Sequence record: PP496438.1
DNA length: 64,000 nt
Strand: one strand, 5' to 3'
Part shown: positions 19,834-58,747 of the stretch, piece by piece
How positions within the stretch are numbered: the stretch's first letter is position 1
How the letters are laid out: each line of letters opens with the position of its first letter
The notes under the pieces: generated by a model
What the model was told of the DNA's origin: nothing
Database searches by the model: none
Seen by the model: the letters and a program-made list of their open reading frames with translations, nothing else
Made by a program: the position numbers and the translations under genes

Positions 19834-19895
19834 AGCGTATAGCAATCGAATACGTGGAATTAGCCCTTAACGGCGTCCCCACTAGCGGAGAACAC

Positions 19896-21374
19896 ATGAA
19901 ATCTGTAGCCGTTGACTACCAAAAGATAGCCAAGGAATGCCAGTGTACCGAGCTGCCTTCTAAGGTAAGAGTTACGCGTGCACGGGTCTATCCAAACTTG
20001 AGGACGTGCCTACTCTTCCTCAAGTACGATGCCAAAGGCGATCTGGTGCAAGCCGAGATCACTGCGCCGTACGACACTTCCACCGAGCCAAAGGTGCGTG
20101 TGCTCAAGCACCCGGACAAGAAGTCCGACTTCCTTTCATTATATAGAGCGCTGATCCGCCATCAGATCATACCCGAGTCTATTCCGAAGAAAGGTAACGG
20201 GATTGCACCGACGCTGGAGGTAATCGGCACACTGGTGAGCCTGCTGCCGGAACGGGATGTCGAAACCTTCCGAACCCTGACCCCGGCCATCCAGACTGGC
20301 AGCGTCATGTACGTCCCTCTGGTTACGTCCCGGCCAATGCCCATGGTGCAACACTGGATACCCGTTGACCAGCATTCAGAGCTGGGCATGATCGAGCTGG
20401 TCGATACGGATAGCAAGCCTTTCCTTAATCAGTGGGTCAACAGGTTGAGCAACACCGCCACCGGTTATGTGATCTACACCCCGGAAGGCTCACACGGTCA
20501 GGAACTCGCCTGCTTCCGTGTGCCCAATGTGCAAGGAGAGGAACTGTGCGTGGTCAAGAAGGTGGACTTCACCCTTACCGTTGCTCGCACCCTCAAGCCG
20601 GTACTGACCGTCTCCACCAAGAGTACGCGTGCCGTATCCCGCATTCCCCTACCCCACTATCTGATGCTGCGCAATCACCACATCAAGGTGGGCACGGTTA
20701 TTTCCCTGCGGCGTAACGACCGAGGTGGGTTGGTGTACCATGAGACGGTGGCAGAGGAAGGGATGACACCTCTGCCACTGTGCCCACATTGCCATAGTGG
20801 ATCTGTGCTGCGAAGTAGTAGCAATGACGTGTACTGCAATAACGATTCATGCCGAGGCCTAGCCATCGTGCGACTTCGCTACATCTTGAACAACAAGCTG
20901 GACGTCAAGTACCTGAGTCAGAACAAGGTGACGGCGTTGGTCAACGACAAGCAGGACCTGTTCAGCTTGCTCAAGACACCGACTCACCTATTGCGGCACA
21001 GAGCGGGCTTCGGTGCACGTACGGTGGATGCGCTGGAAGAGAAGCTGAACACTATCGCCGGTCTTCCACTGCACACGCTGGCCGAGATGTCCTGCGCTTT
21101 CTACAACGTGGGTGTGCCCCCGCTGGATGAGATGGTGTTCAAGAAGATCTTTTCCGTGATGTCGCTTGACCACCTGAAAGCACTGCCCTCCACCGGTAAG
21201 ATGTACAGCCAGTTGCTCGACATCGAAGGTATCCGCAACAACCGCGCAGTGGCTTTCCTCGCTGGTTGGCCTGCATTTCAACAGTGGATGATAGATCTTA
21301 ACGCTGCCCTACAGTCTCGTAGCGCAATCTCCTCCACGGTAAATAACCCGAAACAAATTCGAGGTGTTAAATGA
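19896..21374 (+). CDS. Degenerate NAD+-dependent DNA ligase homologue (OB, C4 Zn finger and HhH retained; KxDG lost)
   Basis: Start moved to 19896 (RBS GGAG). By-eye colinearity with LigA: LEVIGTL, ACFRVP, VKKVDFTLTVARTLKPVL, IKVGTVISLRR, CPHC..YCNNDSC, GFGARTV, DIEGI. The KLDG position reads NLRT. Confidence 0.7.
   Translation: MKSVAVDYQKIAKECQCTELPSKVRVTRARVYPNLRTCLLFLKYDAKGDLVQAEITAPYDTSTEPKVRVLKHPDKKSDFLSLYRALIRHQIIPESIPKKGNGIAPTLEVIGTLVSLLPERDVETFRTLTPAIQTGSVMYVPLVTSRPMPMVQHWIPVDQHSELGMIELVDTDSKPFLNQWVNRLSNTATGYVIYTPEGSHGQELACFRVPNVQGEELCVVKKVDFTLTVARTLKPVLTVSTKSTRAVSRIPLPHYLMLRNHHIKVGTVISLRRNDRGGLVYHETVAEEGMTPLPLCPHCHSGSVLRSSSNDVYCNNDSCRGLAIVRLRYILNNKLDVKYLSQNKVTALVNDKQDLFSLLKTPTHLLRHRAGFGARTVDALEEKLNTIAGLPLHTLAEMSCAFYNVGVPPLDEMVFKKIFSVMSLDHLKALPSTGKMYSQLLDIEGIRNNRAVAFLAGWPAFQQWMIDLNAALQSRSAISSTVNNPKQIRGVK
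21339..21344 (+). promoter_or_regulatory. GTAAAT element before first QueC-like gene
   Basis: 32 nt upstream of the 21371 start. Confidence 0.45.
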
Positions 21375-22135
21375 ACAATCAAAACAGAACTCGTATCGCT
21401 GTGCTTGTCGGCGGCGGTCTGGACTCACATGCGTACATGGTGTTGAAAGCCGACCAGCCTCAGACAGACTTCATTCATGTGGACTACGGCCAGCGGGTTG
21501 CAGTAGCCGAGAGAAACGCCGTGTTGCAAATGGCTGAGAAGCTGGGCATTGCCCGCAGCCGGGTGTACACGCTGATCTGCAACAAGAAGAATCACATGCG
21601 CAAGGTCAATGACGGTGTGGGTGTGTTGTTTGGCACCGGCCCGGTCGAGATGGACAATGCGTTTGTTAAGGGGCGTAACCTGTTCCTGATTCAGAAGGCC
21701 ATCGAGCTGGGCTACGGTCACGTGCACCTGACGCTGACCCAAGAGCGTGGCCGGATGTTCCCCGATGCCGATCTGGCATTCGTCCAGCTGGTGGACAACC
21801 TGATGCACCGCAGTTATGACGTGAGGGTGTCCGCACCCTACATCATGGAAGACAAACACCGGGTGATGTTCAAGGCGTATCGGCACTGTCCCGAGTTCAT
21901 CGATATGTCTTTCACGTGCTGGGTAGGTCCTTATGTGGAATGCGGAACGTGCCCGCACTGCTACAAGAAGGAAAAGATTCGAGCCGAGATGATCGTTGAG
22001 AAGATTGAATACGATCTCAGCAAGGATGAACGTGAGGCGCAGTGGGAGCAAGTCAAGGCAGGCTACGGCGACGCGTTGAAGCCCGCTGAGACCATCAACA
22101 TGAACATTCAGGTTGTTGACGGGGAAATGAAATGA
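21371..22135 (+). CDS. queC: QueC-like PP-loop ATP pyrophosphatase 1 (divergent)
   Basis: VLVGGGLDS (SGGxDS variant), VDYGQR, KGRNLF, FPDAD, FTCW..ECGTCPHC (Zn site). Confidence 0.8.
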   Translation: MNNQNRTRIAVLVGGGLDSHAYMVLKADQPQTDFIHVDYGQRVAVAERNAVLQMAEKLGIARSRVYTLICNKKNHMRKVNDGVGVLFGTGPVEMDNAFVKGRNLFLIQKAIELGYGHVHLTLTQERGRMFPDADLAFVQLVDNLMHRSYDVRVSAPYIMEDKHRVMFKAYRHCPEFIDMSFTCWVGPYVECGTCPHCYKKEKIRAEMIVEKIEYDLSKDEREAQWEQVKAGYGDALKPAETINMNIQVVDGEMK

Positions 22136-22893
22136 ACAAGTTCTTAGGTTGGTTCAAGCGTCTGCTGGGTAAGGAGCAAAAGGCGGTAACGATGACAATG
22201 ACCGACGCCAGTGGCAAGTTGGTCACCATTCATATACCTAAAGGTGCTGGGGTTGAGTACACCTTGTCGAAGTCGGGTGCCCACTTGAACGTCTCGGTCA
22301 AGGACGACATCTTCGTATTGAGCACGAACGGTGCTGGAGGCGGTGGGGGTGGCCGCGGTAGATCCAAACCTGGTGGCCCCGTCCATCCGCCCGTGCATCC
22401 GCGCCAAACCGTCCCAGTGGGTCCAGGCGCCCCGAACATGGGTTGCGCTGGGGACGCACCGAGTGGAGCAGGTGTAACGTCGCCAGTGGGCGCTCAAGCT
22501 TCGTTCCCTATCGGTGCCCGAGCCACTGTTTCTGGTGGTGGCCGCGTTGGTGGTCTGGCGGGTGACGGACGGGAACACAGAGAACTCGGAGGTGCACCCG
22601 GTCCCGGCGGAGATAGCTTCGTGCCCTCTCCAATCCGTAGTAGTGACCGAGCCTATCGCATCCGCGGTCTGTACTACGTCATTACGACTCGAAAGCTTAC
22701 AGGTGAGGAGTACCCGACCCACGAACTTCTGCACTGGGGCCTTCGAGACATAGAACTCATGGGCAAGTTCTCAACGGTCCGTGAAGCTATCGACGAACTC
22801 AAGAGTAAGCTGGGTATCGTGTTAGACGATATTACGGACTATCAGGTTGACTCCATTCCCAAACGAATGTGCAAACCACCGCACAAATCTTGA
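22132..22893 (+). CDS. Hypothetical protein with Gly/Pro-rich disordered middle
   Basis: ATGA overlap with queC-like 1; amphipathic N-terminus, ~100 aa Gly/Pro/Ala-rich linker, globular C-terminus. Confidence 0.6.
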   Translation: MNKFLGWFKRLLGKEQKAVTMTMTDASGKLVTIHIPKGAGVEYTLSKSGAHLNVSVKDDIFVLSTNGAGGGGGGRGRSKPGGPVHPPVHPRQTVPVGPGAPNMGCAGDAPSGAGVTSPVGAQASFPIGARATVSGGGRVGGLAGDGREHRELGGAPGPGGDSFVPSPIRSSDRAYRIRGLYYVITTRKLTGEEYPTHELLHWGLRDIELMGKFSTVREAIDELKSKLGIVLDDITDYQVDSIPKRMCKPPHKS

Positions 22894-22897
22894 GCGG

Positions 22898-22903
22898 GTA
22901 AAT
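22898..22903 (+). promoter_or_regulatory. GTAAAT element
   Basis: Intergenic, 34 nt upstream of 22932. Confidence 0.55.
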
Positions 22904-22931
22904 GGCTCGCAACTAATCCGGAGACACTAGC

Positions 22932-23750
22932 ATGACCACTACACCCCCTAAGATTATCGTCGCATTCAGCGCTGGCACAGATTCAACCACAGCGGCCTAT
23001 TACTATCGCAAGCTCGGGTATCAGGTTACGCTGGCTGTCTTCGATGATGGCCCCTGCAACGATCCAAAGGATCCTCTGTACGATCCTAACAAGCCGGAAG
23101 ATCTTACCAATTTCTCCGACGAGTTCTACGATTACGTACGAATCCATCAAGAACACACTGAGGGTCACCTGCAGTTCGACTTTGTGGAGATCCGTTACCC
23201 ACAGCTCCCGTTGTTGGAAGCCAACAAGACGGCTAAACCTGGTCGGGACAACGCGGCGGCAGCCGAAGCTGACGGCTTGGGGTTCTGGGTAGGCTTCAAA
23301 GGCCTGATGGCGATGATGCTGATGAGCCACGGCGCGGCCAACGGTTACGAGGCTGTAGTCTTCGGCCACATGCCGTACAACAACCATTACGAAGATGAGC
23401 TGCCGCAGAACTTCGAGCTGCTGCGCCAGTACATGGTTACGGCCTATGGTAGCCGGGTGACTATTCCTCAGGTCTATCACCCGTTCTACCGACCCAACTT
23501 TGATACCAAAGAAAAGGTTATCCAGCTGGCGTTGAACATCGGTGTGCCACTGGGAGATACTTATTCGTGCCGCCGAGGTGAAGCGGAAACCCGAGGCGTC
23601 CTCCTGCCACTTCTGCGCGGCGGTAAATCCAACTACGTGATGCCCACCTACCGCTGGAAGCATTGCGGAACGTGTGAGAACTGTGTAGAACGCAAGCGAG
23701 CTTTCGCCGCGCTGGGCATGAAAGACCCAGCCCCTTATATGGAACATTGA
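22932..23750 (+). CDS. queC: QueC-like PP-loop ATP pyrophosphatase 2 (divergent)
   Basis: IVAFSAGTDSTT, YEDELPQNF (cf. YPDCRPEF), TKEKVIQLALNIGVPLGDTYSC ... HCGTCENCVERKRAF. Confidence 0.8.
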   Translation: MTTTPPKIIVAFSAGTDSTTAAYYYRKLGYQVTLAVFDDGPCNDPKDPLYDPNKPEDLTNFSDEFYDYVRIHQEHTEGHLQFDFVEIRYPQLPLLEANKTAKPGRDNAAAAEADGLGFWVGFKGLMAMMLMSHGAANGYEAVVFGHMPYNNHYEDELPQNFELLRQYMVTAYGSRVTIPQVYHPFYRPNFDTKEKVIQLALNIGVPLGDTYSCRRGEAETRGVLLPLLRGGKSNYVMPTYRWKHCGTCENCVERKRAFAALGMKDPAPYMEH

Positions 23751-23751
23751 T

Positions 23752-24741
23752 ATGGCCCTTTCAATCTGGCCGCTGACCGAAGGTGAACTCGGTCAGGGCC
23801 TCGTCAACGAACTGAATCGTACCAGCAAGGCGCTGGTGAACCGGAGTATGTGGTCTTTGCCATTGCTCCGGCGTTTGTTTTATCGGCGCACCGAGATTGG
23901 TGTCCCGGAGCTACTCCACGTCTGTACCAGCATTCATCGGGGCAAGACTTACTTCTGCCTGTTGGTGAACTTCCGAGACGTGGTGATGGGCAATCCCGAC
24001 CAGTATGGCTGGGATCTGGCGGGCCGCTGGTTGTTCTACGACGTTGATCTGCTGGACACCCCGCCGTTCAAAGCGGTGAAGAAGTCCGTTGAGTCCCGTG
24101 CTACCAAGACCGAAGTGTCGTACGGTCAGGCTTTCCTCCCTTACGAGAAGAGCGATGAGGAATACGTCAAGTCCCTCAAGGGCAACTACAAGCCCCACAT
24201 CTTCGGCGAGAAGTCCAAGCAGTATCGCATCTCATCGTACTTCGGACTGGCAGCGGTAGCCCCCTTCGCTCAAGCTCTGATGTGCTTCGGCATTCAGCGC
24301 GCCGAAAGGTTTATGGCCGAAGGGCAGAACGATGTCCTCCCCGAATTGTACGACCTGCCACTGCAACTGGCTGGTCTTGGTAACATCTCGAACACCCGCA
24401 TCGGCTGTGTGACCATTGAAGTAGAAGGTACGATGGTAGGTGCTATCAGCATGTATGCTCAAGGTGCACTTGGTGATGCTGACATGCTGTATCTGCATGA
24501 AATCCTCATCGACCCGGACCCCAAGTGGAAGAGCTTGTCACTGGCTACTCTGCTGCACATTCATGCCGTCCTGTACTATCGCCGATCCCTCCAGAAAGAC
24601 GTAGTGTTCAATCTGGGCTACAACTTCGCCGACGGATATCAAGGTTACAAGGATGTCTTCCGGCCCAACGCCAATAGCTTCAACGTGTACACCGAGATGG
24701 ACACCGAGCCCGGCGTACCACTGTCCTGTTTCAAGGGGTAA
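23752..24741 (+). CDS. Fem/BioF2-type GNAT-fold protein 1
   Basis: C-terminal GNAT strands (IEVEGTMVGAISM, YLHEILIDP) ending FNLGYNFADGYQGYKDVF, like the D/N-x-G...YK terminal motif of this clan. Confidence 0.5.
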   Translation: MALSIWPLTEGELGQGLVNELNRTSKALVNRSMWSLPLLRRLFYRRTEIGVPELLHVCTSIHRGKTYFCLLVNFRDVVMGNPDQYGWDLAGRWLFYDVDLLDTPPFKAVKKSVESRATKTEVSYGQAFLPYEKSDEEYVKSLKGNYKPHIFGEKSKQYRISSYFGLAAVAPFAQALMCFGIQRAERFMAEGQNDVLPELYDLPLQLAGLGNISNTRIGCVTIEVEGTMVGAISMYAQGALGDADMLYLHEILIDPDPKWKSLSLATLLHIHAVLYYRRSLQKDVVFNLGYNFADGYQGYKDVFRPNANSFNVYTEMDTEPGVPLSCFKG

Positions 24742-24744
24742 GAC

Positions 24745-25746
24745 ATGTACACTCCGTATTCCCAAAACAGCCTTATGCAGTCGATCCCTCTGGATGACCA
24801 AGGTACATTCGCCCATCCACCGTACACGATGGAAGGAGAGTTCACCGACGTGTGGACGAATCCCAGCCTGTACGGGTTTGTTAGCTTGTTGAACGGTCAG
24901 AGCAATAGCCGGGCATATCGAGACTGGATGACCACCCACAATCTTCCAGCCCTGTTCCTCGGTCCGCACCATGAAGACAACTTCTGGTTTGAATTCAGCA
25001 CTGGTCTCGATTCCAACTGCACGCTGGATTACAACGAGATCAACGTCCAAGGCAACCTGCAGGACTTCCTTGGGAGATTGACGTCATCTCGCCGTCGCTC
25101 CGTGCTCAAGGCAAAGGAAACGGATACAATGATCCACAAGGCAGGCTCGGTAGCCAACTTCAACCTGTATCATCCGGTAGAGGGTAGGCTGTATAGTCTG
25201 ACCGTGATTCACGAACGCCGGGTGATGAAAGATATTTCCGAGTTTATCGAATCGAAACTCTGGAGTATGAAGCATACGCCTACTGACCTCACGTACGGTG
25301 CATTCACCACTCTGATGGACTACATCCGGTTGAAGCAGCGAGATGACACGCCGCTGGGCCACCGGTTGCGCAACGTACAGCTCTTGGTTATCCGAGATGA
25401 ACGCTCCGGGTTTATCGTGTCGGTACACCTGGTGGCGATCACCACGTTGAAAGATGAGTCCATGAACCCCATCAAGACGTACATGCACTCCTTCGCACGC
25501 ATCACTGTTCTCCCTGCACGCATCGCCTTACTTGCGTTGATCAAGGCGGTTCAAGAGTTAAACGTCACCAGTCAGTATGCGTCCCGTGCACTGGCGAAGA
25601 TCGACTATCTTGATGTGAGCAACGTGGTGCTGTCCGAGCGAGAGCAGTACAAGTCGGACTTCTTCACCGGCAAATGCCAAGTGCGTGCGTGGGCATCCCC
25701 GGCGCTGCTGGAACGGCAGTTACCTTTCGTCACGCCGATCCCGTAA
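24745..25746 (+). CDS. Fem/BioF2-type GNAT-fold protein 2
   Basis: LQDFLGRLTSSRRRSVLKA helix and terminal YLDVSN...EQYKSDF. Confidence 0.5.
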   Translation: MYTPYSQNSLMQSIPLDDQGTFAHPPYTMEGEFTDVWTNPSLYGFVSLLNGQSNSRAYRDWMTTHNLPALFLGPHHEDNFWFEFSTGLDSNCTLDYNEINVQGNLQDFLGRLTSSRRRSVLKAKETDTMIHKAGSVANFNLYHPVEGRLYSLTVIHERRVMKDISEFIESKLWSMKHTPTDLTYGAFTTLMDYIRLKQRDDTPLGHRLRNVQLLVIRDERSGFIVSVHLVAITTLKDESMNPIKTYMHSFARITVLPARIALLALIKAVQELNVTSQYASRALAKIDYLDVSNVVLSEREQYKSDFFTGKCQVRAWASPALLERQLPFVTPIP

Positions 25747-25750
25747 CTCT

Positions 25751-25756
25751 GTAAAT
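25751..25756 (+). promoter_or_regulatory. GTAAAT element
   Basis: Intergenic, 50 nt upstream of 25801. Confidence 0.55.
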
Positions 25757-25800
25757 GATGGGAACAGCCCCACCATCACTTCATCTCTAGGGTAGTTCCC

Positions 25801-26853
25801 ATGCAAGACTTCGATAAGATAATGATCGATAGTAGTTTGACATCCAATCTGGTGTACGCAGGGTTGGGTAACTTGATCACGCCCCGCGCACTTGACCTGC
25901 TGATCGAACATCAGGCTGCACTGGAAAACGTATACGCCAATCTGGAAACGGCCTATCAGATTACCCCACCCTTCCCCTGTGAAGCTGCATTCAATTCCCC
26001 TGACAAAGATCCTGTGCTGGTCGCCGACTATCTGAATGCTACTCCCGCCATCCGTTGCGGAGAGCTGTCTGGATTCGAGGCAAAGCCCGGCAGTTACTAC
26101 CATGCGCCCGCCGCTGGTATCTCCCCGGAACATCGCATTGACGTACGTGGTATGTCTTTGCGTGAGTTCGACCACTATCTGGTTGAGCGTAAGGAAGTAT
26201 CCCGTATCACTACCAATCTGGTGGCCGACAAGTTCCGCTGTGAGACGCATGTGTACAAAGTGGATGAAGATCATATCCTGATCCATGACGCCGAACGAGT
26301 TGGGATCAGCCAGACGGACTTCCGCCGCATGTGGGCGCAGACCCGCCGCCGGGAAATCGCTGAAAACTATCTGCAGTACATGCCCATCGAAGATTCCGCC
26401 AAGGATGATCAGGTGGTGCGACTGATCAACGAAGACGTAGCACGGGTGTTCGCCCAGAACGTCGACTACGACCGCATGATTCCGCCCGAGCTGATCTTCG
26501 ATGGTCAGGGCAAGCCGGTGCTGACCGTGCTGAAAGATTGCAACGCCAAGGTATTGGGCATTGGTGTGTACGTCATCTACAAGTCAGCTGACCCAGAGCA
26601 TGACAGCGAACTGCACTGGCGTGGCGCTTTCTACGATCACGAAGATCCTCGCGTAGCATCCATGGGCATTGAACACGCTCTGGTTGCCAGCGCACTGCAC
26701 ACAGCGTACGCCTGCAACGCGGTCCTCTATCTGACCAAGGCACCTAAGTCCGTGTGCGACGCATGGAAGACGGAAGTGCACCAAGGTTACGGTCTGGTCC
26801 GTAATGCGATGCCGGAACTGTCTGACACCCCTTACATTCTGGCTATCCAGTAA
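25801..26853 (+). CDS. GNAT-fold protein 3 (weakest member of the set)
   Basis: FDHYL helix, VLGIGVYV strand, HWRGAFYD...GIEHALV, terminal LYLT...AWKT; similar size and layout to neighbours. Confidence 0.4.
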   Translation: MQDFDKIMIDSSLTSNLVYAGLGNLITPRALDLLIEHQAALENVYANLETAYQITPPFPCEAAFNSPDKDPVLVADYLNATPAIRCGELSGFEAKPGSYYHAPAAGISPEHRIDVRGMSLREFDHYLVERKEVSRITTNLVADKFRCETHVYKVDEDHILIHDAERVGISQTDFRRMWAQTRRREIAENYLQYMPIEDSAKDDQVVRLINEDVARVFAQNVDYDRMIPPELIFDGQGKPVLTVLKDCNAKVLGIGVYVIYKSADPEHDSELHWRGAFYDHEDPRVASMGIEHALVASALHTAYACNAVLYLTKAPKSVCDAWKTEVHQGYGLVRNAMPELSDTPYILAIQ

Positions 26854-26862
26854 ATAGCCGGT
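26850..26862 (+). promoter_or_regulatory. GTAAATAGCCGGT element
   Basis: 37 nt upstream of 26887; identical 13-mer before queE at 55765. Confidence 0.55.
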
Positions 26863-26886
26863 AACTCCATCCATTGAGGTACTTCC

Positions 26887-28971
26887 ATGAAATCCGTGAA
26901 CCCCATCTTCAAACACGTTCCCCAGTTCGACTGGCCTGTCATTCCCCGTGCGCAGTGGGAAGAGATCATCAAGGGAAAAGAGCATGTGATGTTCGACTCC
27001 TTCTCGCAGCTCGCTCAGGTGCTGGCTATCCCGGTGAGCAGTTACCAGTTCTACTTCGAAGATGGGTCCACGTTGTTCGCCGGTCCCGAAGCAACCTTCA
27101 CCGCCGCCCCCTATCCGTTGTATCAGGATCTGGAATTCGTCCTGACCCCGGATGAGACGTTGGTGCCGGGTCTTGCACTGGATACCAAACCGTGGGGCCT
27201 GTACACCGACGAATGGGTGGACAACTACGAAGGTGCGGACAAGGAAGACATCGGCAACAAGACCGGGTTCGAATTCATTCCGCTGTCGGACGCTTTGAAA
27301 CTGGTGGTCCTCAACACGGAGACCATGCAGCTCCAGTACACTGCAATCGAGAGCTTCACGTACGACGGCGTGACTTACGTATACCTGCTGGCCGATGGCG
27401 TGTGCTGGGTACTGGCGGGCAAGTCCGGTGGTCTGGTTGCCAGCGAGCATGACAAAGGCGCGGCGTTCATCATGGTGTCCCATCCCGAGTTCGCCGGGTG
27501 CAGCGTAGACAACATGTACCCAAGTGAGTTCGGTGAAGCGGAAGCGACGTTCTACGTTCAAGACGAGGAACACAATTACCTGGACGCGGCTAACCGCATC
27601 TTCGAGGAAGCCAAGGACGTAGGCGCTGGCACGTTCCTGACCATTGAGACCGGTGATGGATTGCCGACCGCGCTGGCGTACAACCTGCGGTACAGTGATG
27701 TGGCCCACGTTAATCTGCCGATGCACAACATCCACCAGTTCACTTCTCTTCACGTACGACTGGGTGAGACGCCTAACTTCTCCGAGGCCCCGGAAGCGTG
27801 CCGCATGAAAGAGGTGATGGAGTATCTGGCGGACCCTGAGTCCCCGGTAGATCATTACTGGTCGGCCATCATGGTACTGGAGAAGAACTTCCCCGGTTTC
27901 GCCGACGCCCTGAAAGACTCCAGTGTCCCGACCCGTGACATCGTGCACTCCAAACAGGCGTTCAGCTTGGAGATCGATCGCCAGTTCGGCAAGGAAGTGG
28001 CAAGCAAGATCGGGCTGAACACTGGCGTATTCGCTCAAGTGAAAGACCGTGATGAATGGCTGGTACGCAAACACGAGTTCCCTACCGATAAGGTGGCCGT
28101 CAAGTACAACACCAAACACTTCATCGGCATCTTCGACAAGGACGAGGTATCGAAGTCCATCAACATGTGGCTGGCTGGTCAACCCGGAGAGTCGCTGATG
28201 ATCGAAGAGTACTTCGGTGAGGGCAATCAGGAATTCAACCTGTGCTACGTGATCAACGAAGATTTCGTGCAGCCGACGCTGTTCCTGTGCGAAGTCAACA
28301 AGATCCTCAGCAATGACACCGGCGGCAAAGGTGGCAACACGCTGGCCTGCCATGATGCTCGTATTAACAAGTACCCTGAGTTCTTCGAGCCGGTCAATAA
28401 TGCGCTTGCTAACCTGCATGAGCACGTGGAAGGTGTGAAGGGCTGGGTTGACCTGAGCTTCATGGTTCGCGACGGTATCCCATACTTCACAGAGTGGTGC
28501 ATTCGCATCGGCTGCTCCAACAACGCCACCATCGTGCGCCAGATGGAGACCCCGCTCGACGTCCTGTTGACTAACGTGGTCAACAAGGTGCATACCGAGC
28601 TGTCTTGGAAACACTCCATGTCTGTCAGCGTGGACATCTACAGCATGCCGCTATCCGCAGGCAACGACGCCAACATGCAGTTCACCGACTCGCTGACCAC
28701 TCCGGTAGAGATGGTGTCCCCGCTCAATCTGGAACTGGCGGCGGAGAGTTTCTTCGACCCGATTGATTCGGCCTGGAACGCGGTGTACGACGGCTACATC
28801 GTCGAGGCGTATAATCGCTATGGCACCGTCTCGGGGTACTCCACCAACTGGAACTTCGCCTGCAATGCGGCGTATAATCACTTGAAAGATCAGTCGGTGT
28901 TGTACGGAGCGTACCGCGAAGCGCCTGCCCACCATGACCCACTGACTCTGTTCCCTTTCCTCAAGGCGTAA
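26887..28971 (+). CDS. PurD/GARS-like ATP-grasp ligase with ~245-aa N-terminal extension
   Basis: SLEIDRQFGKEVASKIGL (cf. LEGSKAFTKDFL), MIEEYF, EVNKILSNDTGGKGGNT (cf. DHKR..DGDTGPNTGGMG), FTEWCIRIG (cf. IEFNCRFG). Confidence 0.7.
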   Translation: MKSVNPIFKHVPQFDWPVIPRAQWEEIIKGKEHVMFDSFSQLAQVLAIPVSSYQFYFEDGSTLFAGPEATFTAAPYPLYQDLEFVLTPDETLVPGLALDTKPWGLYTDEWVDNYEGADKEDIGNKTGFEFIPLSDALKLVVLNTETMQLQYTAIESFTYDGVTYVYLLADGVCWVLAGKSGGLVASEHDKGAAFIMVSHPEFAGCSVDNMYPSEFGEAEATFYVQDEEHNYLDAANRIFEEAKDVGAGTFLTIETGDGLPTALAYNLRYSDVAHVNLPMHNIHQFTSLHVRLGETPNFSEAPEACRMKEVMEYLADPESPVDHYWSAIMVLEKNFPGFADALKDSSVPTRDIVHSKQAFSLEIDRQFGKEVASKIGLNTGVFAQVKDRDEWLVRKHEFPTDKVAVKYNTKHFIGIFDKDEVSKSINMWLAGQPGESLMIEEYFGEGNQEFNLCYVINEDFVQPTLFLCEVNKILSNDTGGKGGNTLACHDARINKYPEFFEPVNNALANLHEHVEGVKGWVDLSFMVRDGIPYFTEWCIRIGCSNNATIVRQMETPLDVLLTNVVNKVHTELSWKHSMSVSVDIYSMPLSAGNDANMQFTDSLTTPVEMVSPLNLELAAESFFDPIDSAWNAVYDGYIVEAYNRYGTVSGYSTNWNFACNAAYNHLKDQSVLYGAYREAPAHHDPLTLFPFLKA

Positions 28972-28974
28972 TCC

Positions 28975-30135
28975 ATGAGCACTCCATTCCAAGAGTTCAC
29001 CCTAGAGGGGTGGATTCAACATATGAATCAGGATCAAATCTGGAAGCGGTACGCCAACGATCATCCTAACAGGGTTGAGTTCAGCCCTGTTTGGCGTGAC
29101 GAGATGTATCGGTTGATGGTACAGTTCAAAGAGCTGCTGCCGATGTCGTTCTCCAATCCGGTGTACGGCTTCACCGAAGGCTATCTGGAAGGGTTCGGAC
29201 TCCAGCCTTTCTACGGCGATGATCCTTTCAATCCGATGGTTCAGCCTCTTAGCCATCCTCTGGTTCACGTGGGCTTCCCACTCACACTGGACGAGATCGT
29301 AGCGAGCGTGCGGGACTGGCAGTCCCTGAGCGATCACCTGGGGCGTCCGCAACTGGTCGATACATTCGAGCCGGTTTCACTGCTAGCGCGCAACCTGTAC
29401 GAGCCTAACGCGCTGCTGGCCGTACGGAACAAGGAAGAGATCGTGATGAACGGGGGCACGCCCGCGAACTACTTCCTCTGGCTGAATAGCCCGGTCACCG
29501 AACTCAAAGACGACTTCGACGTTTATCTGGCCAGCCTGACCAAGAAGCGCCGCTACAAAGTGAAGCAGGCGTTGGCGACGGTAGGCACCGAAGAGAATCC
29601 CCGGATCAGCGTCAGCACCGGGTCTCGTTTCGGCGAAGGGCTGTTGTCCGATCAGGTGGACAGCATCCTTGCTACGTTCGAAGATCCAGTGGACATCGAG
29701 TGCATGCTTCTTCAGTTGCTATTCGGGGTTGCAACCTGCAATACCCATCCGCATCTTGTCGATCTGGTGTGTGCAGACCAGCAGTTGGGGATCTTCATCA
29801 AGCGTAACGGCCACACGATGAACTTCCTCTACAACCGCGACCCGGACAACCGCGCTGATTCAGGCATAAACCTGCTTACCCAGTACGTGCGCCATCTGCA
29901 CATGAACCGACCGGAAGGTGTTATGTACGTGGACCCGACATGCCGATATCGGCCTGACGAGGACAGTATGAACACCTACAAGCGGGTGATCACCAACGAG
30001 AACCGGTATCACCCAATGCCGTTCGTCTCGGCTGACCCTGCGCACATCGAAGGTGTGCTTACCCCGGCGTTCATTGCAGGCCATTGGCAGATGTCGGCGT
30101 CCAACGGACCGGCCAACCCCGAGATGATGGAGTAA
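28975..30135 (+). CDS. Fem/BioF2-type GNAT-fold protein 4
   Basis: FDVYLASLTKKRRYKVKQAL (characteristic helix) and terminal YVDP...NTYKRVI. Confidence 0.55.
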   Translation: MSTPFQEFTLEGWIQHMNQDQIWKRYANDHPNRVEFSPVWRDEMYRLMVQFKELLPMSFSNPVYGFTEGYLEGFGLQPFYGDDPFNPMVQPLSHPLVHVGFPLTLDEIVASVRDWQSLSDHLGRPQLVDTFEPVSLLARNLYEPNALLAVRNKEEIVMNGGTPANYFLWLNSPVTELKDDFDVYLASLTKKRRYKVKQALATVGTEENPRISVSTGSRFGEGLLSDQVDSILATFEDPVDIECMLLQLLFGVATCNTHPHLVDLVCADQQLGIFIKRNGHTMNFLYNRDPDNRADSGINLLTQYVRHLHMNRPEGVMYVDPTCRYRPDEDSMNTYKRVITNENRYHPMPFVSADPAHIEGVLTPAFIAGHWQMSASNGPANPEMME

Positions 30136-30137
30136 CC

Positions 30138-31085
30138 ATGGCAAAGTCCAAAATGAGACGGTTGGCGATCAACCACATCTATGACTTCTACCCGTTGTAT
30201 CAGGTGATGTACGGGCGTGGCATGGAGACCAAAGCGTTCGAGGTATCCAAGTTCGCCAAGATGGTTATGGACTTCGAAGCCTCGACCAGTACTCGCCGGA
30301 AGTGGGACGTGCTGGAGCCCTTCAGCGGTATCAGTGAACACGAACACTTCTTCGCTGCGACCGGCCTGAACATCGAGCACTACACCGGCATGGACATTGT
30401 GGTTCCAGATGGGGCCACGAACGTCATTCAAGGGGACATCATCACCGACACCCTTCCGTTTCACGTCAACGCAGTGTTCGCCTTCTACTACAGCTTGCAG
30501 AATGTACGGGACGCGGCGACCGGCATGCACACGCGGGCCAAGCTGGTGGAGTTCTTCGACAACATCATTGGTCATCTGCAAGTAAATGCGAACAAGAGCC
30601 GTATGCCCGCAGTGTTCGCGTTCCACCTTGACCAGCCTGAAGATCCTAATTACTATCTGACGTCCCGTGCCGACGTTGGAGGTGAACAGTCATGGACTGC
30701 ACCCGCGTGTGGTCTGCTCGGGCAGTGGGTCAAGTGCAAGCCGACTGACACTCTGGAAGTCAAGTGCAATCTGGATACCTGGTACAACCGCGTGCAGTGC
30801 ACAGCGTATGATCAGGCAGAGGACATTCAGATTCTGGTAAATGGGAAAGTAACCGCTGTCGTAGACATCGAGCAGCCGTTCACCCATCGGGTCTGGACCG
30901 AGCATGAGGTCATCGATATCCTGCGGGGTCTGGACTACAATCTGCACTTCCACATGTACAACGGCACCCTCTCCAATTACGACTTCTTGATGACCCGGCT
31001 GGACGACAAGCCCGTTCCCGGCGATGAAGAGTCTAATACTAATCAGATGACAACTGATATGTTGGTTGTCGTTAATCCGAGGTAA
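30138..31085 (+). CDS. Class I SAM-dependent methyltransferase 1
   Basis: Start moved to 30138 (RBS GGAG). VLEPFSG (motif I variant), YTGMDI, VIQGDI, VNAVFAFYYSL. Confidence 0.7.
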   Translation: MAKSKMRRLAINHIYDFYPLYQVMYGRGMETKAFEVSKFAKMVMDFEASTSTRRKWDVLEPFSGISEHEHFFAATGLNIEHYTGMDIVVPDGATNVIQGDIITDTLPFHVNAVFAFYYSLQNVRDAATGMHTRAKLVEFFDNIIGHLQVNANKSRMPAVFAFHLDQPEDPNYYLTSRADVGGEQSWTAPACGLLGQWVKCKPTDTLEVKCNLDTWYNRVQCTAYDQAEDIQILVNGKVTAVVDIEQPFTHRVWTEHEVIDILRGLDYNLHFHMYNGTLSNYDFLMTRLDDKPVPGDEESNTNQMTTDMLVVVNPR

Positions 31086-31087
31086 GC

Positions 31088-32005
31088 ATGGCTAAGCCCA
31101 AGGTTCCAACCAAGACGATCCCCACGTTGTACCAAGACTGGGGATTGTACAGCGCCATCTGCGAACTGCCGCAGGAGACGATGCTGATGATGTCGCGCTT
31201 CGTGGCAGACCGAACCATTGAGCACGCTGAGCGTATCGATCAGGTAATGGTCGAGATCATGGAACCCTTCAGCGGCCCAATCCCGTATTACGAGCCAGAC
31301 ATCCGCAGCTTCCTGACCCGCGCTAAGCTTGATCTGTACACGTACGATCACGTCGAATACCTGGATCACGGCAAACTGTCGGAAGACAACGGCATCATCA
31401 TCGGTGACATTACCACCATCGATCTGAAGCAGAAGTACGACGTCATCTACGGCAGTTACGGCAGCTTGGCCTGCCTGCTGCTGGATCAGACGCACAACAA
31501 AGCGTACGAAAAGTCGCACGCGGCGCTGGTCAACATCCGCAACCACCTGAAACCCAACGGCATCTTCATCCTGAACGCCAACGGGTCCAGTGAGAGCCTA
31601 CTGAACAACCTGCTGAACTCCGATGAGCCGGATCAGGAGATTCGCGTTCGTCCGGGATCGCAGCTTGGCAAGAAGTTCGGCATCAAGCCGGACAGCAACG
31701 CGCTGCTTCGCTTCACCTATCACGTGGAGTACGACCGACGCACCACCTGCACCATGTGCCACTACAGCGATATGGTGCTGTCTGTAAATGGGGTTGACAT
31801 CCAGCGCTGGGAGGTGGAATCCCCGACGTATCTTGCTCCGCTGGACGAACCCGAACTAATTCGAATGGCAGGTATGGCTGGTTTCAATCTGGACAACACT
31901 GAGTTCTACGGATTGGACACCACCGGTTATCCTGCCTTCTTCAAAATGGATACGGTCTGCGACGGGTCATGGTCACCCGCCGAGTTCGTAGTCTTTCGCA
32001 CCTAA
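31088..32005 (+). CDS. Class I SAM-dependent methyltransferase 2 (small-molecule N-methyltransferase-like)
   Basis: IMEPFSG, IIGDITTIDLKQKYDVIYGSYGSL, ALVNIRNHLKPNGIFIL, beta-sheet lid insert, ELIRMAGMAGF. Confidence 0.8.
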   Translation: MAKPKVPTKTIPTLYQDWGLYSAICELPQETMLMMSRFVADRTIEHAERIDQVMVEIMEPFSGPIPYYEPDIRSFLTRAKLDLYTYDHVEYLDHGKLSEDNGIIIGDITTIDLKQKYDVIYGSYGSLACLLLDQTHNKAYEKSHAALVNIRNHLKPNGIFILNANGSSESLLNNLLNSDEPDQEIRVRPGSQLGKKFGIKPDSNALLRFTYHVEYDRRTTCTMCHYSDMVLSVNGVDIQRWEVESPTYLAPLDEPELIRMAGMAGFNLDNTEFYGLDTTGYPAFFKMDTVCDGSWSPAEFVVFRT

Positions 32006-32015
32006 CGAGGTTCCT

Positions 32016-33251
32016 ATGAGCGTTATCATCCCCACCGTAGCGATGGAGAGTGGTCAGCCAGACATGATCATTCAAGGCTGTTCCACTGGTCGCGTCTCTA
32101 TGGCCGAGCCTAACGAGAGCGCCAAACCCAAGTCTTCCAAGAAGCTGTACGAACGTGAAGACCTGATGGCGTACGACAGCGAGTCGGAGCACTGGCAGAA
32201 GCAGTTGGCCCGCCGCTACGCTCACCATGGTGAGATGGTCGGTGTGTTGAACAACGTCGAGGTGGTGCCGGAAGCCACCTACCAGAACTTCGACATGAAG
32301 ATCACTCCGTACACCGCGCAGTTGATGGATCAGAACGACCCCAACTGCCCGATTCGTCTGCAGTACATGCCGACCAACAAAGAGCTGGAGTCGATTCAGC
32401 GTGAAGAGACCATGCACAACGAGCTGGGCGAGGAAGAGGACACCGTCCCCGGTACCTCGGTCGTGCACCGCTACCCGCGCCGCGTCTTGTTCCTGACCAC
32501 CACCCAGTGCGCTAGCTTCTGCCGTTACTGCACCCGTGCACGCATCGTCTCTCACGGCGGTGAAGCGGCTATCACCAAGAAGCACCTGGACGCCAGCATC
32601 GACTACATCGCCTCGAACAAGGACATAGAAGACGTGTTGCTGTCCGGCGGTGACCCGTTCATCCTGCCAGACAACAAGCTCGACGAGATCCTCGGTCGTA
32701 TCCGCGCCGAAGCACCTCACGTTCGCTTCCTGCGTATTGGTAGCCGACTGCCGGTACAGATGCCGACTCGTATCACTCCAGAGCTGTGCGAGATTCTGGA
32801 ACGCCACAACGTCAACATGGTCAACATCCATGTGAACCACCCGAAAGAGGTCACCCCACTGCTGGCCTCCCGGATGAAGATGTTGCGCAAAGCTGGCGTG
32901 ATGATCGGTAATCAGGCGGTCCTCCTGAAAGGCGTGAACGACTCCATCGAGGTGATGACCGAGCTGTGCTTGCGCATGGTCGAGATGGGTGTGCGTCCGT
33001 ACTACGTCTACTCCAACGATCCGGTTGCGCAGGCCGCACACTTCACCGTCTCGCTCCGTGATATGCTGGACATCAACGAAGGCATGCGTGGCTTCCTGTC
33101 CGGCCCGGCAATGCCCACCTTCGTGGTGGACGGCGTGGGTGGCTTGGGCAAGATGCCCGTGCAGAAAGAGTATGTGACAGTACTGGGGAGTGGTAAGATC
33201 TGGGCCACCAACTTCGAAGGAATGACCACTCGCATGCCCCATCTGGAGTAA
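32016..33251 (+). CDS. kamA: Lysine 2,3-aminomutase family radical SAM/PLP enzyme
   Basis: CPIRLQYMP, HRYPRRVLF, CASFCRYC (CxxxCxxC), LLSGGDP, RIGSRLPV, HVNHPKE, NQAVLLKGVND, RPYY, GGLGKMPV (PLP Lys). Confidence 0.92.
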   Translation: MSVIIPTVAMESGQPDMIIQGCSTGRVSMAEPNESAKPKSSKKLYEREDLMAYDSESEHWQKQLARRYAHHGEMVGVLNNVEVVPEATYQNFDMKITPYTAQLMDQNDPNCPIRLQYMPTNKELESIQREETMHNELGEEEDTVPGTSVVHRYPRRVLFLTTTQCASFCRYCTRARIVSHGGEAAITKKHLDASIDYIASNKDIEDVLLSGGDPFILPDNKLDEILGRIRAEAPHVRFLRIGSRLPVQMPTRITPELCEILERHNVNMVNIHVNHPKEVTPLLASRMKMLRKAGVMIGNQAVLLKGVNDSIEVMTELCLRMVEMGVRPYYVYSNDPVAQAAHFTVSLRDMLDINEGMRGFLSGPAMPTFVVDGVGGLGKMPVQKEYVTVLGSGKIWATNFEGMTTRMPHLE

Positions 33252-55810: not shown

Positions 55811-56782
55811 ATGAAAGATATGCGCTATACCGAACTGTTCTATTCCCTCCAAGGTGAGGGGTTGCGCGTTGGAGTGCCGTCGGTATTCTTCCGCATGTTC
55901 GGTTGCAACTTCGAGTGCAAGGGGTTCTCCAATCCTGAAATGAAAGATCCCAACGTGATCCCAGCACTTAATCTGCTGTCGATCAACGAAGCTGACCTGG
56001 AGCTGGGTTGTGACTCTCGTTACAGCTGGCACAAGGACTATCGCAACCTGGCCGTCAAAGCCCCGCCTCACGAGGTAGCCAACACCCTGCTCGACTTCAC
56101 GAAAGAGAAGCACTTGGCGGCGGTGGCTCGCTGGCCCAAGCGCAACCATGCAGGCAATGTCATCCGCTTGATCGCCGGTCAGCCCACAGGTGAAATACTC
56201 CAGATTGCTACGCTGGCGCACGTGCCTGACTGGGTCTTCACCGGTGGTGAACCGTTCATGCAGCAAGAGCAACTTGAAGCCCTGCTGCGGCACACCATGT
56301 ACGTGGTGGAGGAAGAACAGGTTGACTTCGGCGGCGTCGGGCTTCCTATGTTGACCTTCGAAACTAACGCCAGCATCAAGATGCGTGACTCTATGGTTAG
56401 CTGCCTGAGTGAGTACAATGACAGCTTCGGTGACCTGCACTTCTCCAACAGCCCCAAGCTGTCGTTCACCGGAGAGCATCGCAGTGCGGCGCTCAAGCCC
56501 GAAGTTATCGGCCAGCAAGAGCAAACGGGTGGATCCAGTTCTTTCAAGTTCGTGGTACGCCCCGCACGTGAAGACTTCGATGAGCTGATGGAGTTCATGC
56601 AAGAGTACATGTCGTACACCGGATCGGGCAATCTGGAAGGCATTTACGTCATGCCGGTCGGTGCCAGCCTACATCAACAGCAGGCCATCGCCACACAGGT
56701 TGCCGAGCTGGCACTGGAATACGGCCTGTCCTACAGCCCCCGACTCCAGTGTGACCTGTGGGCCAACAAGATAGGGACGTGA
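55811..56782 (+). CDS. queE: 7-carboxy-7-deazaguanine synthase (radical SAM)
   Basis: ELFYSLQGEG..GVPSVFFRMFGCNFEC...CDS..SW, FTGGEP, FETN, SNSPKL, KFVV, YVMPVG, SPRLQ. Confidence 0.88.
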   Translation: MKDMRYTELFYSLQGEGLRVGVPSVFFRMFGCNFECKGFSNPEMKDPNVIPALNLLSINEADLELGCDSRYSWHKDYRNLAVKAPPHEVANTLLDFTKEKHLAAVARWPKRNHAGNVIRLIAGQPTGEILQIATLAHVPDWVFTGGEPFMQQEQLEALLRHTMYVVEEEQVDFGGVGLPMLTFETNASIKMRDSMVSCLSEYNDSFGDLHFSNSPKLSFTGEHRSAALKPEVIGQQEQTGGSSSFKFVVRPAREDFDELMEFMQEYMSYTGSGNLEGIYVMPVGASLHQQQAIATQVAELALEYGLSYSPRLQCDLWANKIGT

Positions 56783-56784
56783 TC

Positions 56785-57126
56785 ATGGATTCCTTTCAAG
56801 AGTGGTTCATTTACGACGTGATGTTTTGGGTGACGACAGGTGCCATGTTACTCGTTGCCTTGATGAGCTTACTGGTGACACTGGTACTGGTCAAGATGGA
56901 CCAGCGCATGGTAAATAAAGGTTACTGGAGTGCACCCCAAAATCGGGGTGATCCGGCCTTCCTGTGGTTCCACATAACCATGACCGTGATCTTCTTTCTC
57001 CTTGTCATCACGGACCTCATAAACGCCAGACTGTTCACTATCATCGGAACCCTTGGGTACTGCGCTATCTCTATATACGCGCTGATCCTCAGGTTCCCCA
57101 CAACTACCAACAAGGACACCCCGTAA
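56785..57126 (+). CDS. Three-TM membrane protein
   Basis: Start moved to 56785; three hydrophobic segments. Confidence 0.65.
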   Translation: MDSFQEWFIYDVMFWVTTGAMLLVALMSLLVTLVLVKMDQRMVNKGYWSAPQNRGDPAFLWFHITMTVIFFLLVITDLINARLFTIIGTLGYCAISIYALILRFPTTTNKDTP

Positions 57127-58738: not shown

Positions 58739-58747
58739 GGGCCTACC

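Follow-up and report, generated by a model that had tools for sequence, protein, structure and literature searches.

In the phage 7-deazaguanine pathways described so far, the step after 7-carboxy-7-deazaguanine (CDG) is carried out by a single protein, QueC or Gat-QueC, or is skipped; eight phage 7-deazaguanine bases are known, and preQ0 is the commonest phage precursor. Here we analyse two genes of the QueC family (Pfam PF06508), which we call Q1 and Q2, in a stretch of 64,000 nucleotides (the window) that is 100% identical to Pseudomonas phage vB_PpuM-SKa-4 (PP496438.1; hereafter SKa-4), a jumbo myovirus of P. putida with a genome of 202,022 bp from the Estonian CEPEST collection. The same region occurs in eight sister phages, with 86–97% DNA identity to SKa-4, and the paper on the collection mentions none of QueC, queuosine and deazaguanine. 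These phages are in culture with a laboratory P. putida strain as host; a look-up of public sequencing runs returned none. Coordinates are those of the window unless stated otherwise; adding 138,022 gives the position in the record. We find that Q1 and Q2 form a conserved gene pair that differs from canonical QueC, Cap9, QatC and Gat-QueC, and that may provide a two-protein version of the step after CDG.

Canonical QueC carries an experimentally defined signature (SGGxDS, YxQxHxxE, VPxRN, YPDC and C(x)8CxxCxxC), with Y35, R99, Y131 and Y189 essential. Cap9, from the cyclic-oligonucleotide-based antiphage signalling system (CBASS) of type IV, is about 185 amino acids (aa) long and is marked by LxSGGxDS, Y/FxQ(x)5E, RN, YxDC and CE(x)6CxxCxxCxD. 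In the Cap9–CdnD crystal structure (PDB 9NTO), which has a Cap9 homodimer core, Y115, D117 and R86 hold the deazaguanine, and S18, D22 and S23 bind pyrophosphate; the S18A/S23A double mutant is inactive, and the Cap9 reaction stops at the amide. QatC, of the QatABCD system, is about 400 aa long, with N- and C-terminal extensions and a motif set of its own, and works in an obligate partner complex. Gat-QueC, found in Queuovirinae and jumbo Xanthomonas phages as part of the dG+ pathway, has an N-terminal glutamine amidotransferase domain and is encoded with FolE, QueD, QueE and DpdA. PF06508 is functionally diverse and also has LarE, GMP synthase-like and WbpG-like members; LarE and GMP synthase (GMPS) lack the four-Cys zinc site. 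In phage 7-deazaguanine DNA modification, the signature protein is a transglycosylase of the DpdA/TGT family (Hutinet et al.). The acceptors known for the QueC family, ammonia and a protein N-terminus, were mapped only in 2025–2026. A preliminary description of the locus, made from the DNA letters alone, had taken as background that QueC adenylates CDG and then adds ammonia, and that QatC and Cap9 ligate CDG to a protein amine; this agrees with the literature, save that for QatC the modification is inferred there and not shown.

Two QueC-family genes in one interval

The interval 21371–23750, previously read as two QueC genes, holds three plus-strand open reading frames (ORFs); both of the genes noted do belong to PF06508, with a third ORF between them:

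21371–22135, plus strand: Q1, QueC-family PP-loop protein of the Q1 lineage, 254 aa (PF06508, 68.9 bits)
22132–22893, plus strand: Gly/Pro-rich ORF, genus-specific, 253 aa, with conserved N- and C-terminal parts (alignment A2)
22932–23750, plus strand: Q2, QueC-family PP-loop protein of the Q2 lineage, 272 aa (PF06508, 46.1 bits)

Both Q1 and Q2 pass the PF06508 gathering cut-off of 22 bits, Q1 by a full-length match (E 5.6e-19) and Q2 by its C-terminal half only (residues 129–260, E 5.5e-12). All ten of the best named ESM Atlas clusters are PF06508 for Q1, and likewise for Q2, and PHROGs and PADLOC concur on the family. The motifs quoted in the preliminary description (GGGLDS, SAGTDS, FPDAD, YEDEL, a zinc site in both proteins, RN in Q1 only) are all present in the translations: Q1 reads VLVGGGLDSH, DYGQRVAVAE, VKGRNLF, MFPDADL and C183(x)7C191xxC194xxC197, and Q2 reads FSAGTDST, HYEDELP and C213(x)31C245xxC248xxC251, with WVGFKG where RN is expected. 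Across the genus, protein conservation is 92–100% for Q1 and Q2 while dS reaches 0.7; dN/dS is 0.10–0.27 for Q1 and about 0.06 for Q2, and both genes are under purifying selection.

The two proteins are distant from each other and from their described relatives. BLASTP aligns Q1 and Q2 only over the CGxCxxC stretch of the zinc motif (E 0.023), and the nearest phage relatives found by tblastn are QueC and Gat-QueC proteins with 22–27% identity. A HMMER search with Q2, exhaustive over 1.84 billion representatives, returned a small family (P0004–P0014) with 29–54% identity. Word-index protein searches with Q1 and with the family of the neighbouring gene w_333 (see below) gave matches only inside the SKa-4 genus, and IMG/VR scans with Q1 and with Q2 gave none.

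Q1-type and Q2-type genes form a conserved pair

A Q1-type gene lies immediately upstream of a Q2-type gene in 13 independent loci. Contigs and loci compared with SKa-4 are given L-numbers below, and the neighbourhoods outside SKa-4 were read mostly from short metagenomic contigs. Every Q2-seeded contig with visible upstream DNA has a Q1-type gene before the Q2-type gene (L010, L011, L012, L013, L015, L016 and L017), and more distant loci show the same order (L026, L027 and L028). A profile search with the Q1 family added members from long contigs; both of those examined (L029 and L030/L031) have a Q2-type gene directly downstream, so the pairs were recovered from Q2-seeded and Q1-seeded searches alike. 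The distances from the Q1 stop to the Q2 start are -38, -17, -4, -4, -4, -1, 0, 3, 3, 8 and 15 nt, and a gene is inserted within the pair only in SKa-4 (the Gly/Pro-rich ORF) and in L012 (a w_333-type gene). This adjacency in 13/13 loci, mostly with overlapping or abutting codons, gives strong indirect support, if not a demonstration, to the earlier idea that the two proteins act together, perhaps as a heterodimer.

The motifs are as conserved as the gene order. Among the tabulated Q1-type proteins with a visible N-terminus, 9 of 10 have GGG(L/F)DS as PP-loop, as do those of L029 and L030, and the sole exception among visible N-termini is SGGLDC in L027. GGGLDS is a family-level trait of the Q1 type. 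The Q1-type signature (alignment A5) further comprises Yx(Q/H)(x)5E, an aromatic-x-D-(A/G) motif and TCW...CGxCxHC with short spacing, and RN is invariant (12/12 proteins). Q2-type proteins (alignment A4) have an invariant SxGxDS, F/I-D-x-G in place of YxQ and G-(aromatic)-K/V in place of RN, followed by (Y/F)xD(E/S), SC and HCGxCxxCxxR with a variable long spacer. Longer members of the Q2 type hold an insert of 50–80 residues, and Q2 itself has an extra insert after strand 2. Both PP-loops had initially been taken as signs of divergence: for Q1 the alteration marks the whole family, whereas SAGTDS in Q2 is a within-family variant of SxGxDS, which reads SGGIDS in other Q2-type proteins.

By HMMER alignment, Q1 has F130, D132 and R102 at the base-contact positions of Cap9 and G14, D18 and S19 at the pyrophosphate positions. 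In Q2, alignment of family motifs puts Y153 and D155 at the corresponding sites, with an aromatic residue in place of Arg, and S13, D17 and S18 in the loop. A plausible base pocket and the greater part of a pyrophosphate loop thus appear to be retained in each protein, with the defect in a different place.

The Gly/Pro-rich ORF has no counterpart between the Q1-type and Q2-type genes of 11 other loci, and its product, which begins Met-Asn, has no match in Pfam, PHROG or PADLOC. It is nevertheless a real gene, as indicated by its conserved ends, a linker that varies only by in-frame insertions and deletions, and a dN/dS of about 0.22. Its SPIRS(S/P)D motif also occurs in an extra C-terminal tail of Q1 in phage Peetri (L006:2985–3809), which hints at a shared docking peptide or at a local rearrangement.

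Comparison with described QueC-family systems

With canonical QueC (TIGR00364), the two proteins share the superfamily, the PP-loop, the four-Cys zinc site and the aromatic-x-Asp motif, and the model of Q2 shares the fold; the SKa-4 context, with FolE, a QueD-like protein, a QueE-like protein and a transglycosylase, is also alike. However, two proteins replace one, and they score 62.4 bits (Q1) and 22.9 bits (Q2) against the TIGR00364 equivalog cut-off of 150.3 bits. The differences extend to every motif. SGGxDS is GGGLDS in Q1 and SAGTDS in Q2, which fits only the looser SxGxDS. In place of YxQxHxxE, Q1 has YGQRVAVAE, which keeps Tyr, Gln and Glu, has no His and is one residue longer, and Q2 has only FDDG. 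VPxRN corresponds to VKGRN in Q1 and to VGFKG, without RN, in Q2. YPDC is FPDA in Q1 and YEDE in Q2, so that the aromatic residue and Asp are kept and Cys is gone in both. Both proteins have the four Cys of C(x)8CxxCxxC, the first spacing being C(x)7C in Q1 and C(x)31C in Q2.

Q1 resembles Cap9 in its YxQ(x)5E motif without His, in RN, in aromatic-x-Asp and in C(x)7CxxCxxC. It differs from Cap9 in lacking the first Ser of the PP-loop and the Cys of YxDC, in its length (254 aa with a 50-residue C-terminal extension) and in always having a Q2 partner. The Cap9-type 'QueC' model of PADLOC scores Q1 at 64.2 bits and does not surpass the Pfam QueC model, and Pfam and PADLOC found no CD-NTase, Cap10 (TGT-like) or Cap11 (OGG-like) among the 12 operon genes. 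We rejected membership of Cap9: the features of the protein itself give a mixed picture, and the context is one without CD-NTase, Cap10 or Cap11.

Q2 resembles QatC in its remodelled active site and long-spaced zinc motif, and the obligate partner complex of QatC is a further likeness. The extensions and motif set of QatC set it apart from both Q1 (254 aa) and Q2 (272 aa). The PADLOC model of QatC matches Q2 marginally (E 0.058 over 29 residues) and does not match Q1; this, the lengths and the lack of qatA, qatB and qatD led us to reject membership. Gat-QueC proteins are among the nearest phage homologues by tblastn and have a similar set of pathway genes beside them, but neither Q1 nor Q2 has the glutamine amidotransferase domain or any such N-terminal extension, which excludes them from this type. 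The Gat-QueC family phrog_10428 matches by its QueC part only (profile positions 251–471).

The archaeosine route offers a further comparison: ArcS transfers lysine to preQ0, and a radical-SAM cleavage by RaSEA follows. The likeness lies in the linkage of a 7-deazaguanine, lysine and a radical-SAM enzyme; the difference is that the radical-SAM enzyme of the SKa-4 operon is a close homologue of KamA and not RaSEA. A small three-sequence hidden Markov model (HMM) found no protein with DUF5591, which we take to be a domain of ArcS, or otherwise like ArcS among the SKa-4 ORFs. Since Q1 and Q2 lack tested defining features of canonical QueC, Cap9, QatC and Gat-QueC, we file them as a new paired variant within PF06508.

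Predicted structure and phylogeny

The AlphaFold2 model of Q2, built from an 80-sequence alignment, has a mean pLDDT (predicted local distance difference test) of 90.2 and a pTM (predicted template modelling score) of 0.89, and only the zinc-spacer loop (217–226) is disordered. Foldseek against the PDB ranks Erwinia QueC (2pg3, E 1e-8) and B. subtilis QueC (3bl5) first, then TtuA and Cap9 (9nto_B); the template modelling (TM) scores by target are 0.69–0.75 for 2pg3 and 3bl5 and 0.72 for 9nto_B, and no QatC chain is among the 50 matches listed. By this model, Q2 is predicted to have the QueC fold. For Q1, the best sequence match among solved structures is Cap9 (9nto_B, E 1e-8), followed by B. 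subtilis QueC (E 4e-5), and Q1 aligns end to end with both 9nto_B and 3bl5.

We placed both proteins in a quick IQ-TREE reconstruction of the family (69 rows, SH-aLRT supports). Q1-type proteins form a clade with support 99; Q2-type proteins fall within a 24-row clade (support 99) of proteins that keep the PP-loop without the other QueC motifs; and Gat-QueC is a separate clade (support 97). The phylogeny that had been called for thus puts Q1, Q2 and Gat-QueC in separate, well-supported clades; the Cap9-like group is well supported as well, and the deep branches of the family are not. The description of Q1 and Q2 as paralogues is qualified accordingly: they lie in different clades and have no BLASTP similarity beyond the zinc motif, but their grouping in one clade is not rejected by the approximately unbiased (AU) test (p 0.63). 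Given this result and the weak deep branches, we make no claim on duplication versus separate recruitment of Q1 and Q2.

The sister group of the Q1 clade consists of short QueC-like proteins on Rhizobiaceae plasmids, with a support of 83 that is not decisive. These 196-aa proteins, the nearest cellular homologues of Q1, belong to defence-like islands (L023:1661–7478, L024 and L025) with the order PfkB kinase, TIR, OGG-like DNA lyase, QueC-like, TIR, DUF4231, TIR; a CD-NTase is not annotated there.

7-deazaguanine pathway genes of SKa-4

Other genes of a 7-deazaguanine pathway lie elsewhere in the SKa-4 genome, the last two below outside the window:

55811–56782, plus strand: QueE-like radical-SAM enzyme with an insert, candidate CDG synthase (phrog_2076, E 1e-41)
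58748–59470, plus strand: FolE, GTP cyclohydrolase I (PF01227, E 1.7e-37; NCBIfam FolE models to E 9e-41, all below their curated cut-offs)
SKa-4 record 81641–83311 (L003:31641–33311), minus strand: transglycosylase of TGT/DpdA type, 557-codon ORF, annotated as hypothetical protein SKa4_00105 of 456 aa
L002:17747–18949, in the SKa-4 record: QueD-like SKa4_00018, 400 aa, annotated as hypothetical (PF01242, 34.2 bits, cut-off 22.4)

The QueE-like protein has N-terminal matches to NCBIfam QueE, matches a small QueE HMM (E 3e-11) and has a homologue in Vibrio phage GR7B (E 4e-68). It has an internal insert and measures 323 aa, against 234–254 aa for the phage QueE proteins with which it was compared. 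In L017 and L029, QueE genes are likewise found close to the pair. Beside the DNA polymerase (55811–59470) are QueE, the gene of a small membrane protein, a clamp-like gene, an ORF of 129 aa and FolE, an arrangement reminiscent of Queuovirinae, where the corresponding neighbourhood holds DpdA and QueD.

Three-sequence HMMs for DpdA, QueD and the DUF5591 protein of GR7B, run on all SKa-4 ORFs, were insensitive (DpdA missed, QueD at E 0.21); the TGT-like and QueD-like genes were traced through annotated TGT-domain and PTPS-like proteins of GR7B. The TGT-like protein matches its GR7B counterpart at E 3e-180 and PF01702 with 32.4 bits (cut-off 26.3), and in its alignment with ArcTGT (1iq8) both DSGGFQ and the zinc motif CxCxxC are matched. 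The homology to GR7B begins about 75 codons before the annotated start of SKa4_00105, so this start is probably wrong. The protein is 97.5–100% identical in 9/9 phages, and its clade includes those of Vibrio phages GR7B and GR11A, Xanthomonas phage PhiXhv, Erwinia phage Ep032, Phage NCTB, Burkholderia phage BCSR5 and Achromobacter phage Motura; the jumbo phages of Vibrio, Xanthomonas and Erwinia with QueC or Gat-QueC clusters also have it. SKa4_00018 is unusually long for a QueD-like protein; its PTPS/QueD domain is at the C-terminus, and it is homologous to a 324-aa PTPS-like protein of GR7B.

By sequence, SKa-4 is therefore predicted to encode both a phage transglycosylase and the FolE/QueD/QueE set, which together make up the signature of phage 7-deazaguanine DNA modification. 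A canonical QueC is neither annotated nor detected in its genome.

The operon around the pair

The pair lies in a run of twelve plus-strand genes (19854–33251) with gaps of -4 to 54 nt, divergent from a helicase gene; a scan of the region for promoters and terminators gave signals at chance level only. Besides the three ORFs above, the run comprises:

19854–21374, plus strand: LigA-derived DNA-binding protein with an OB fold, a 4-Cys zinc finger and HhH, which opens the operon; annotated start 19896, stop overlapping the Q1 start
23752–24741, plus strand: w_329, travels with the pair; motif N(F/Y)xPHxFGxKS
24745–25746, plus strand: w_333, of all neighbours the one with the tightest link to Q2; motif DxxNV...YKxxFF
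25801–26853, plus strand: w_350, no family match in Pfam or PHROG and no homologue found outside the genus
26887–28971, plus strand: w_694, PurD-like ATP-grasp domain at residues about 356–550 (Pfam GARS_A, E 0.031; PDB PurD 1vkz, E 0.02)
28975–30135, plus strand: w_386, travels with the pair; homologues in GR7B, L011 (two copies), L012, L027 and L029
30138–32005, plus strand: w_315 and w_305, tandem paralogues of a conserved family; w_305 with a weak methyltransferase-like match
32016–33251, plus strand: w_411, radical-SAM enzyme of the lysine 2,3-aminomutase (KamA) family, last gene of the operon (Pfam Radical_SAM and LAM_C)

The protein w_411 is predicted from sequence to be a bona fide phage-encoded KamA-family aminomutase. 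It matches PDB 2A5H at E 4.7e-80, has CxxxCxxC, and conserves the residues aligned to D293, D330 and K337, which we take to be the ligands of the lysine epsilon-amine and the pyridoxal phosphate lysine; it is 51% identical to a gene of GR7B. We also considered thymidine hypermodification for the downstream genes and did not retain it: only the KamA homologue is found at the Pfam gathering level, and no aGPT-Pplase-type model was seen among the weak matches, which does not exclude such a route.

Clustering of the neighbouring genes shows that w_333, w_329, w_386, w_315 and the ATP-grasp gene recur beside the pair in rearranged contexts. Homologues of w_329 adjoin the pair in L010, L011, L017 (two copies) and L030. 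The w_333-type gene directly follows Q2 in L014/L015 and in L016, is the second gene after it in SKa-4 and L011, and lies between the pair in L012. Homologues of w_694 occur in GR7B, L012, L017, L027 and L029 (with GARS_A on record for three), and in SKa-4, L012, L017, L027 and L029 the pair has an ATP-grasp gene as a neighbour. In L030, a 140-kb metagenomic phage contig, an Amidoligase_2 gene (PF12224; L030:11310–12197) follows the pair at the slot of the ATP-grasp gene, which looks like a swap of one carboxylate-amine ligase for another; a GNAT gene lies five genes further on.

PDB profile searches gave no match for the w_329 and w_333 families, and w_329 has no Pfam match. The AlphaFold model of w_333 (pLDDT 45.7) was not used; only its order of secondary structures hints at a GNAT-like fold, and ESM Atlas gave only weak GNAT leads. 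Thin-profile hhalign comparisons of w_329, w_333, w_350, w_386, w_315, w_694 and the LigA-like protein with DpdA, DUF5591, QueD, GNAT and L/F-transferase gave nothing. The LigA-derived protein matches NCBIfam LigA over positions 394–497 only and a PDB ligase at E 0.013 (residues 240–365), and its GR7B homologue has Pfam DNA_ligase_OB and HHH. Its novel N-terminal region has no conserved Lys across four homologues, and the phage encodes a separate full-length NAD-dependent ligase. In L011 and in GR7B, too, the LigA-derived gene is found in synteny upstream of the QueC genes.

Vibrio phages GR7B and GR11A share a syntenic module with SKa-4 (LigA-like, w_386, w_694, KamA and topoisomerase). In GR7B, the slot of the pair (L018:6503–9112) is taken by genes for a DUF5591 protein and a canonical QueC (204 bits), and by another, divergent QueC-like gene (63 bits) whose very long branch is not assignable to Q1 or Q2, and the module also has a GNAT gene.

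Proposed explanation and alternatives

We propose that Q1 and Q2, as two subunits, process CDG in a phage pathway that modifies DNA with a 7-deazaguanine, and that their product is probably a derivative of amide type and not plain preQ0; this is the explanation we favour, and we hold it tentatively, at somewhat less than an even chance. The family, the conserved residues, the pairing, the operon content and the pathway genes described above, with the predicted fold, form its basis, and the substrate, complex, amine donor, product and DNA target are what it adds by inference. The phage FolE, QueD-like and QueE-like proteins would make CDG. Q1 and Q2, as different ATP pyrophosphatases of the QueC family, would cooperate, most likely as a heteromer arising from coupled translation, which is likely given the translational coupling in most lineages and the precedent of the Cap9 homodimer core. 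Q1, which keeps the deazaguanine-holding residues of Cap9 and QueC, would adenylate the carboxylate and form an amide, and Q2, with an intact pyrophosphate loop, Tyr-x-Asp, a zinc site and a remodelled pocket, would carry out a second ATP-dependent step on the product of Q1. The KamA-type aminomutase, the ATP-grasp ligase and other operon proteins may supply or extend a side chain derived from an amino acid, and the TGT/DpdA-type enzyme would then swap the product for guanine in DNA. Alternatively, the pair may act on a base already in the DNA, tethered by the ligase-derived DNA-binding protein.

An amide product bearing an amino acid is plausible because Q1 has the Cap9-like features that separate Cap9 from nitrile-forming QueC, because the pair is linked to carboxylate-amine ligases, and because KamA is present in two lineages. 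In its most specific form, the proposal would make the Q1–Q2 heteromer a new 7-deazaguanine amide synthetase that joins CDG, free or in DNA, to beta-lysine made by KamA or to another amine derived from an amino acid, the side chain being extended by the ATP-grasp or amidoligase enzyme and the neighbouring proteins to give a ninth, amino-acid-bearing base in the DNA of jumbo phages that form a widespread group. We regard this extended form as possible but doubtful. It takes up the earlier suggestion of a non-ammonia amine such as beta-lysine, for which the KamA of the operon and the ATP-grasp or Amidoligase_2 gene beside the pair are circumstantial support and not a demonstration.

Several observations weigh against the favoured explanation. 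Co-inheritance of the Q1 and Q2 types is clear, but strict co-divergence is not, since the pairwise distances of the two families are only modestly correlated (Mantel r 0.36, p about 0.02). Only SKa-4 and GR7B were found to have KamA, no ATP-grasp gene was recognised in the 16 kb seen of L011, and the neighbours w_329, w_333, w_386 and w_315 remain without assignment. As Q1 lacks the first Ser of the PP-loop and the S18A/S23A mutant of Cap9 is inactive, Q1 could be a weak or non-catalytic subunit. Finally, the canonical QueC of GR7B occupies the same syntenic slot as the SKa-4 pair, and the lack of a canonical QueC in SKa-4 allows, on grounds of parsimony, that the pair simply makes preQ0.

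These last two points lead to the possibility of a split or heteromeric preQ0 synthase, in which the pair converts CDG first to 7-amido-7-deazaguanine (ADG), next to preQ0, as QueC does, perhaps with one half-reaction each; the DpdA-type enzyme would insert preQ0, and the neighbours would serve elsewhere or later. It would fill the one gap left by the FolE, QueD-like, QueE-like and TGT-like proteins, it agrees with the zinc site and aromatic-x-Asp kept by both proteins, and preQ0 is the commonest of the phage precursors. Still, both proteins score far under the QueC equivalog cut-off, the full signature with the residues proven essential is in neither, the linkage with ATP-grasp or amidoligase genes and with conserved neighbours is left unexplained, and the P. 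putida host has a QueC of its own. We judge such a synthase less likely than the favoured explanation, to which it is nonetheless a strong rival and the chief one. The complementary defects of the two proteins (Q1 without the first PP-loop Ser, Q2 without RN and YxQ) and the dead Cap9 mutant also fit a pair in which one member is non-catalytic, with Q1 or Q2 as a scaffold or specificity subunit. However, S, G, D and S in the PP-loop of Q2 and GGG.DS, RN and aromatic-x-Asp in Q1 are invariant or nearly so among sequences of 20–50% identity, which suggests functional constraint on both sites and makes a non-catalytic member improbable.

The acceptor might also be a protein. A Cap9- or QatC-like reaction in which CDG is ligated to a protein N-terminus, of the phage or of the host, for instance in counter-defence or regulation, would agree with the best structure and plasmid matches of Q1, which are Cap9 and the Cap9-like proteins of the TIR/OGG-type islands, with its position as sister to those plasmid proteins, although that node is not decisive, and with the YxQ(x)5E and C(x)7C variants common to Q1 and Cap9. 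Pfam and PADLOC found no CD-NTase, Cap10 or QatA/B/D, the neighbours are enzymes with no obvious substrate among them, and the Met-Asn start of the Gly/Pro-rich protein is, by the general rule of Met removal, unlike the exposed small N-terminus of known substrates. The conserved DpdA-type transglycosylase and the FolE, QueD-like and QueE-like proteins of the CDG pathway point instead to DNA. The protein N-terminus considered in the preliminary description is for these reasons not favoured as acceptor, and we see protein deazaguanylation as distinctly improbable. Given the functional diversity of PF06508 and the remodelled pocket of Q2, the pair could in principle act like the LarE, GMP synthase-like or WbpG-like members and adenylate a different carboxylate or carbonyl. 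A substrate other than a deazaguanine seems most improbable: both proteins keep the QueC-type four-Cys zinc site that LarE and GMPS lack, the aromatic residue and Asp that contact the deazaguanine are conserved, the best fold matches of Q2 are QueC and Cap9, and QueE is linked in three lineages.

If the favoured explanation holds, a conserved two-protein version replaces the single QueC in a group of jumbo phages and is tied to a beta-lysine-forming enzyme and to carboxylate-amine ligases. A new product would add both a DNA hypermodification and a new QueC-family reaction. It would also suggest functions for several 'dark matter' families of phages, as the neighbours of the pair include five conserved families with no assigned function.

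Observations in related phages

According to the CEPEST preprint, the DNA of the G3 jumbo phages binds very poorly to a standard phage DNA kit, and host prophages protect more than 1000-fold against these phages; neither property has so far been linked to DNA modification. In Xanthomonas phage PhiXhv-12 (L020:2005–10410), a Gat-QueC cluster includes genes for a DUF5591-like protein, an L/F-tRNA-protein-transferase-like protein, an LmbE-like deacetylase and a glycosyltransferase, and this predicted gene content suggests further, undescribed elaborations of 7-deazaguanine.

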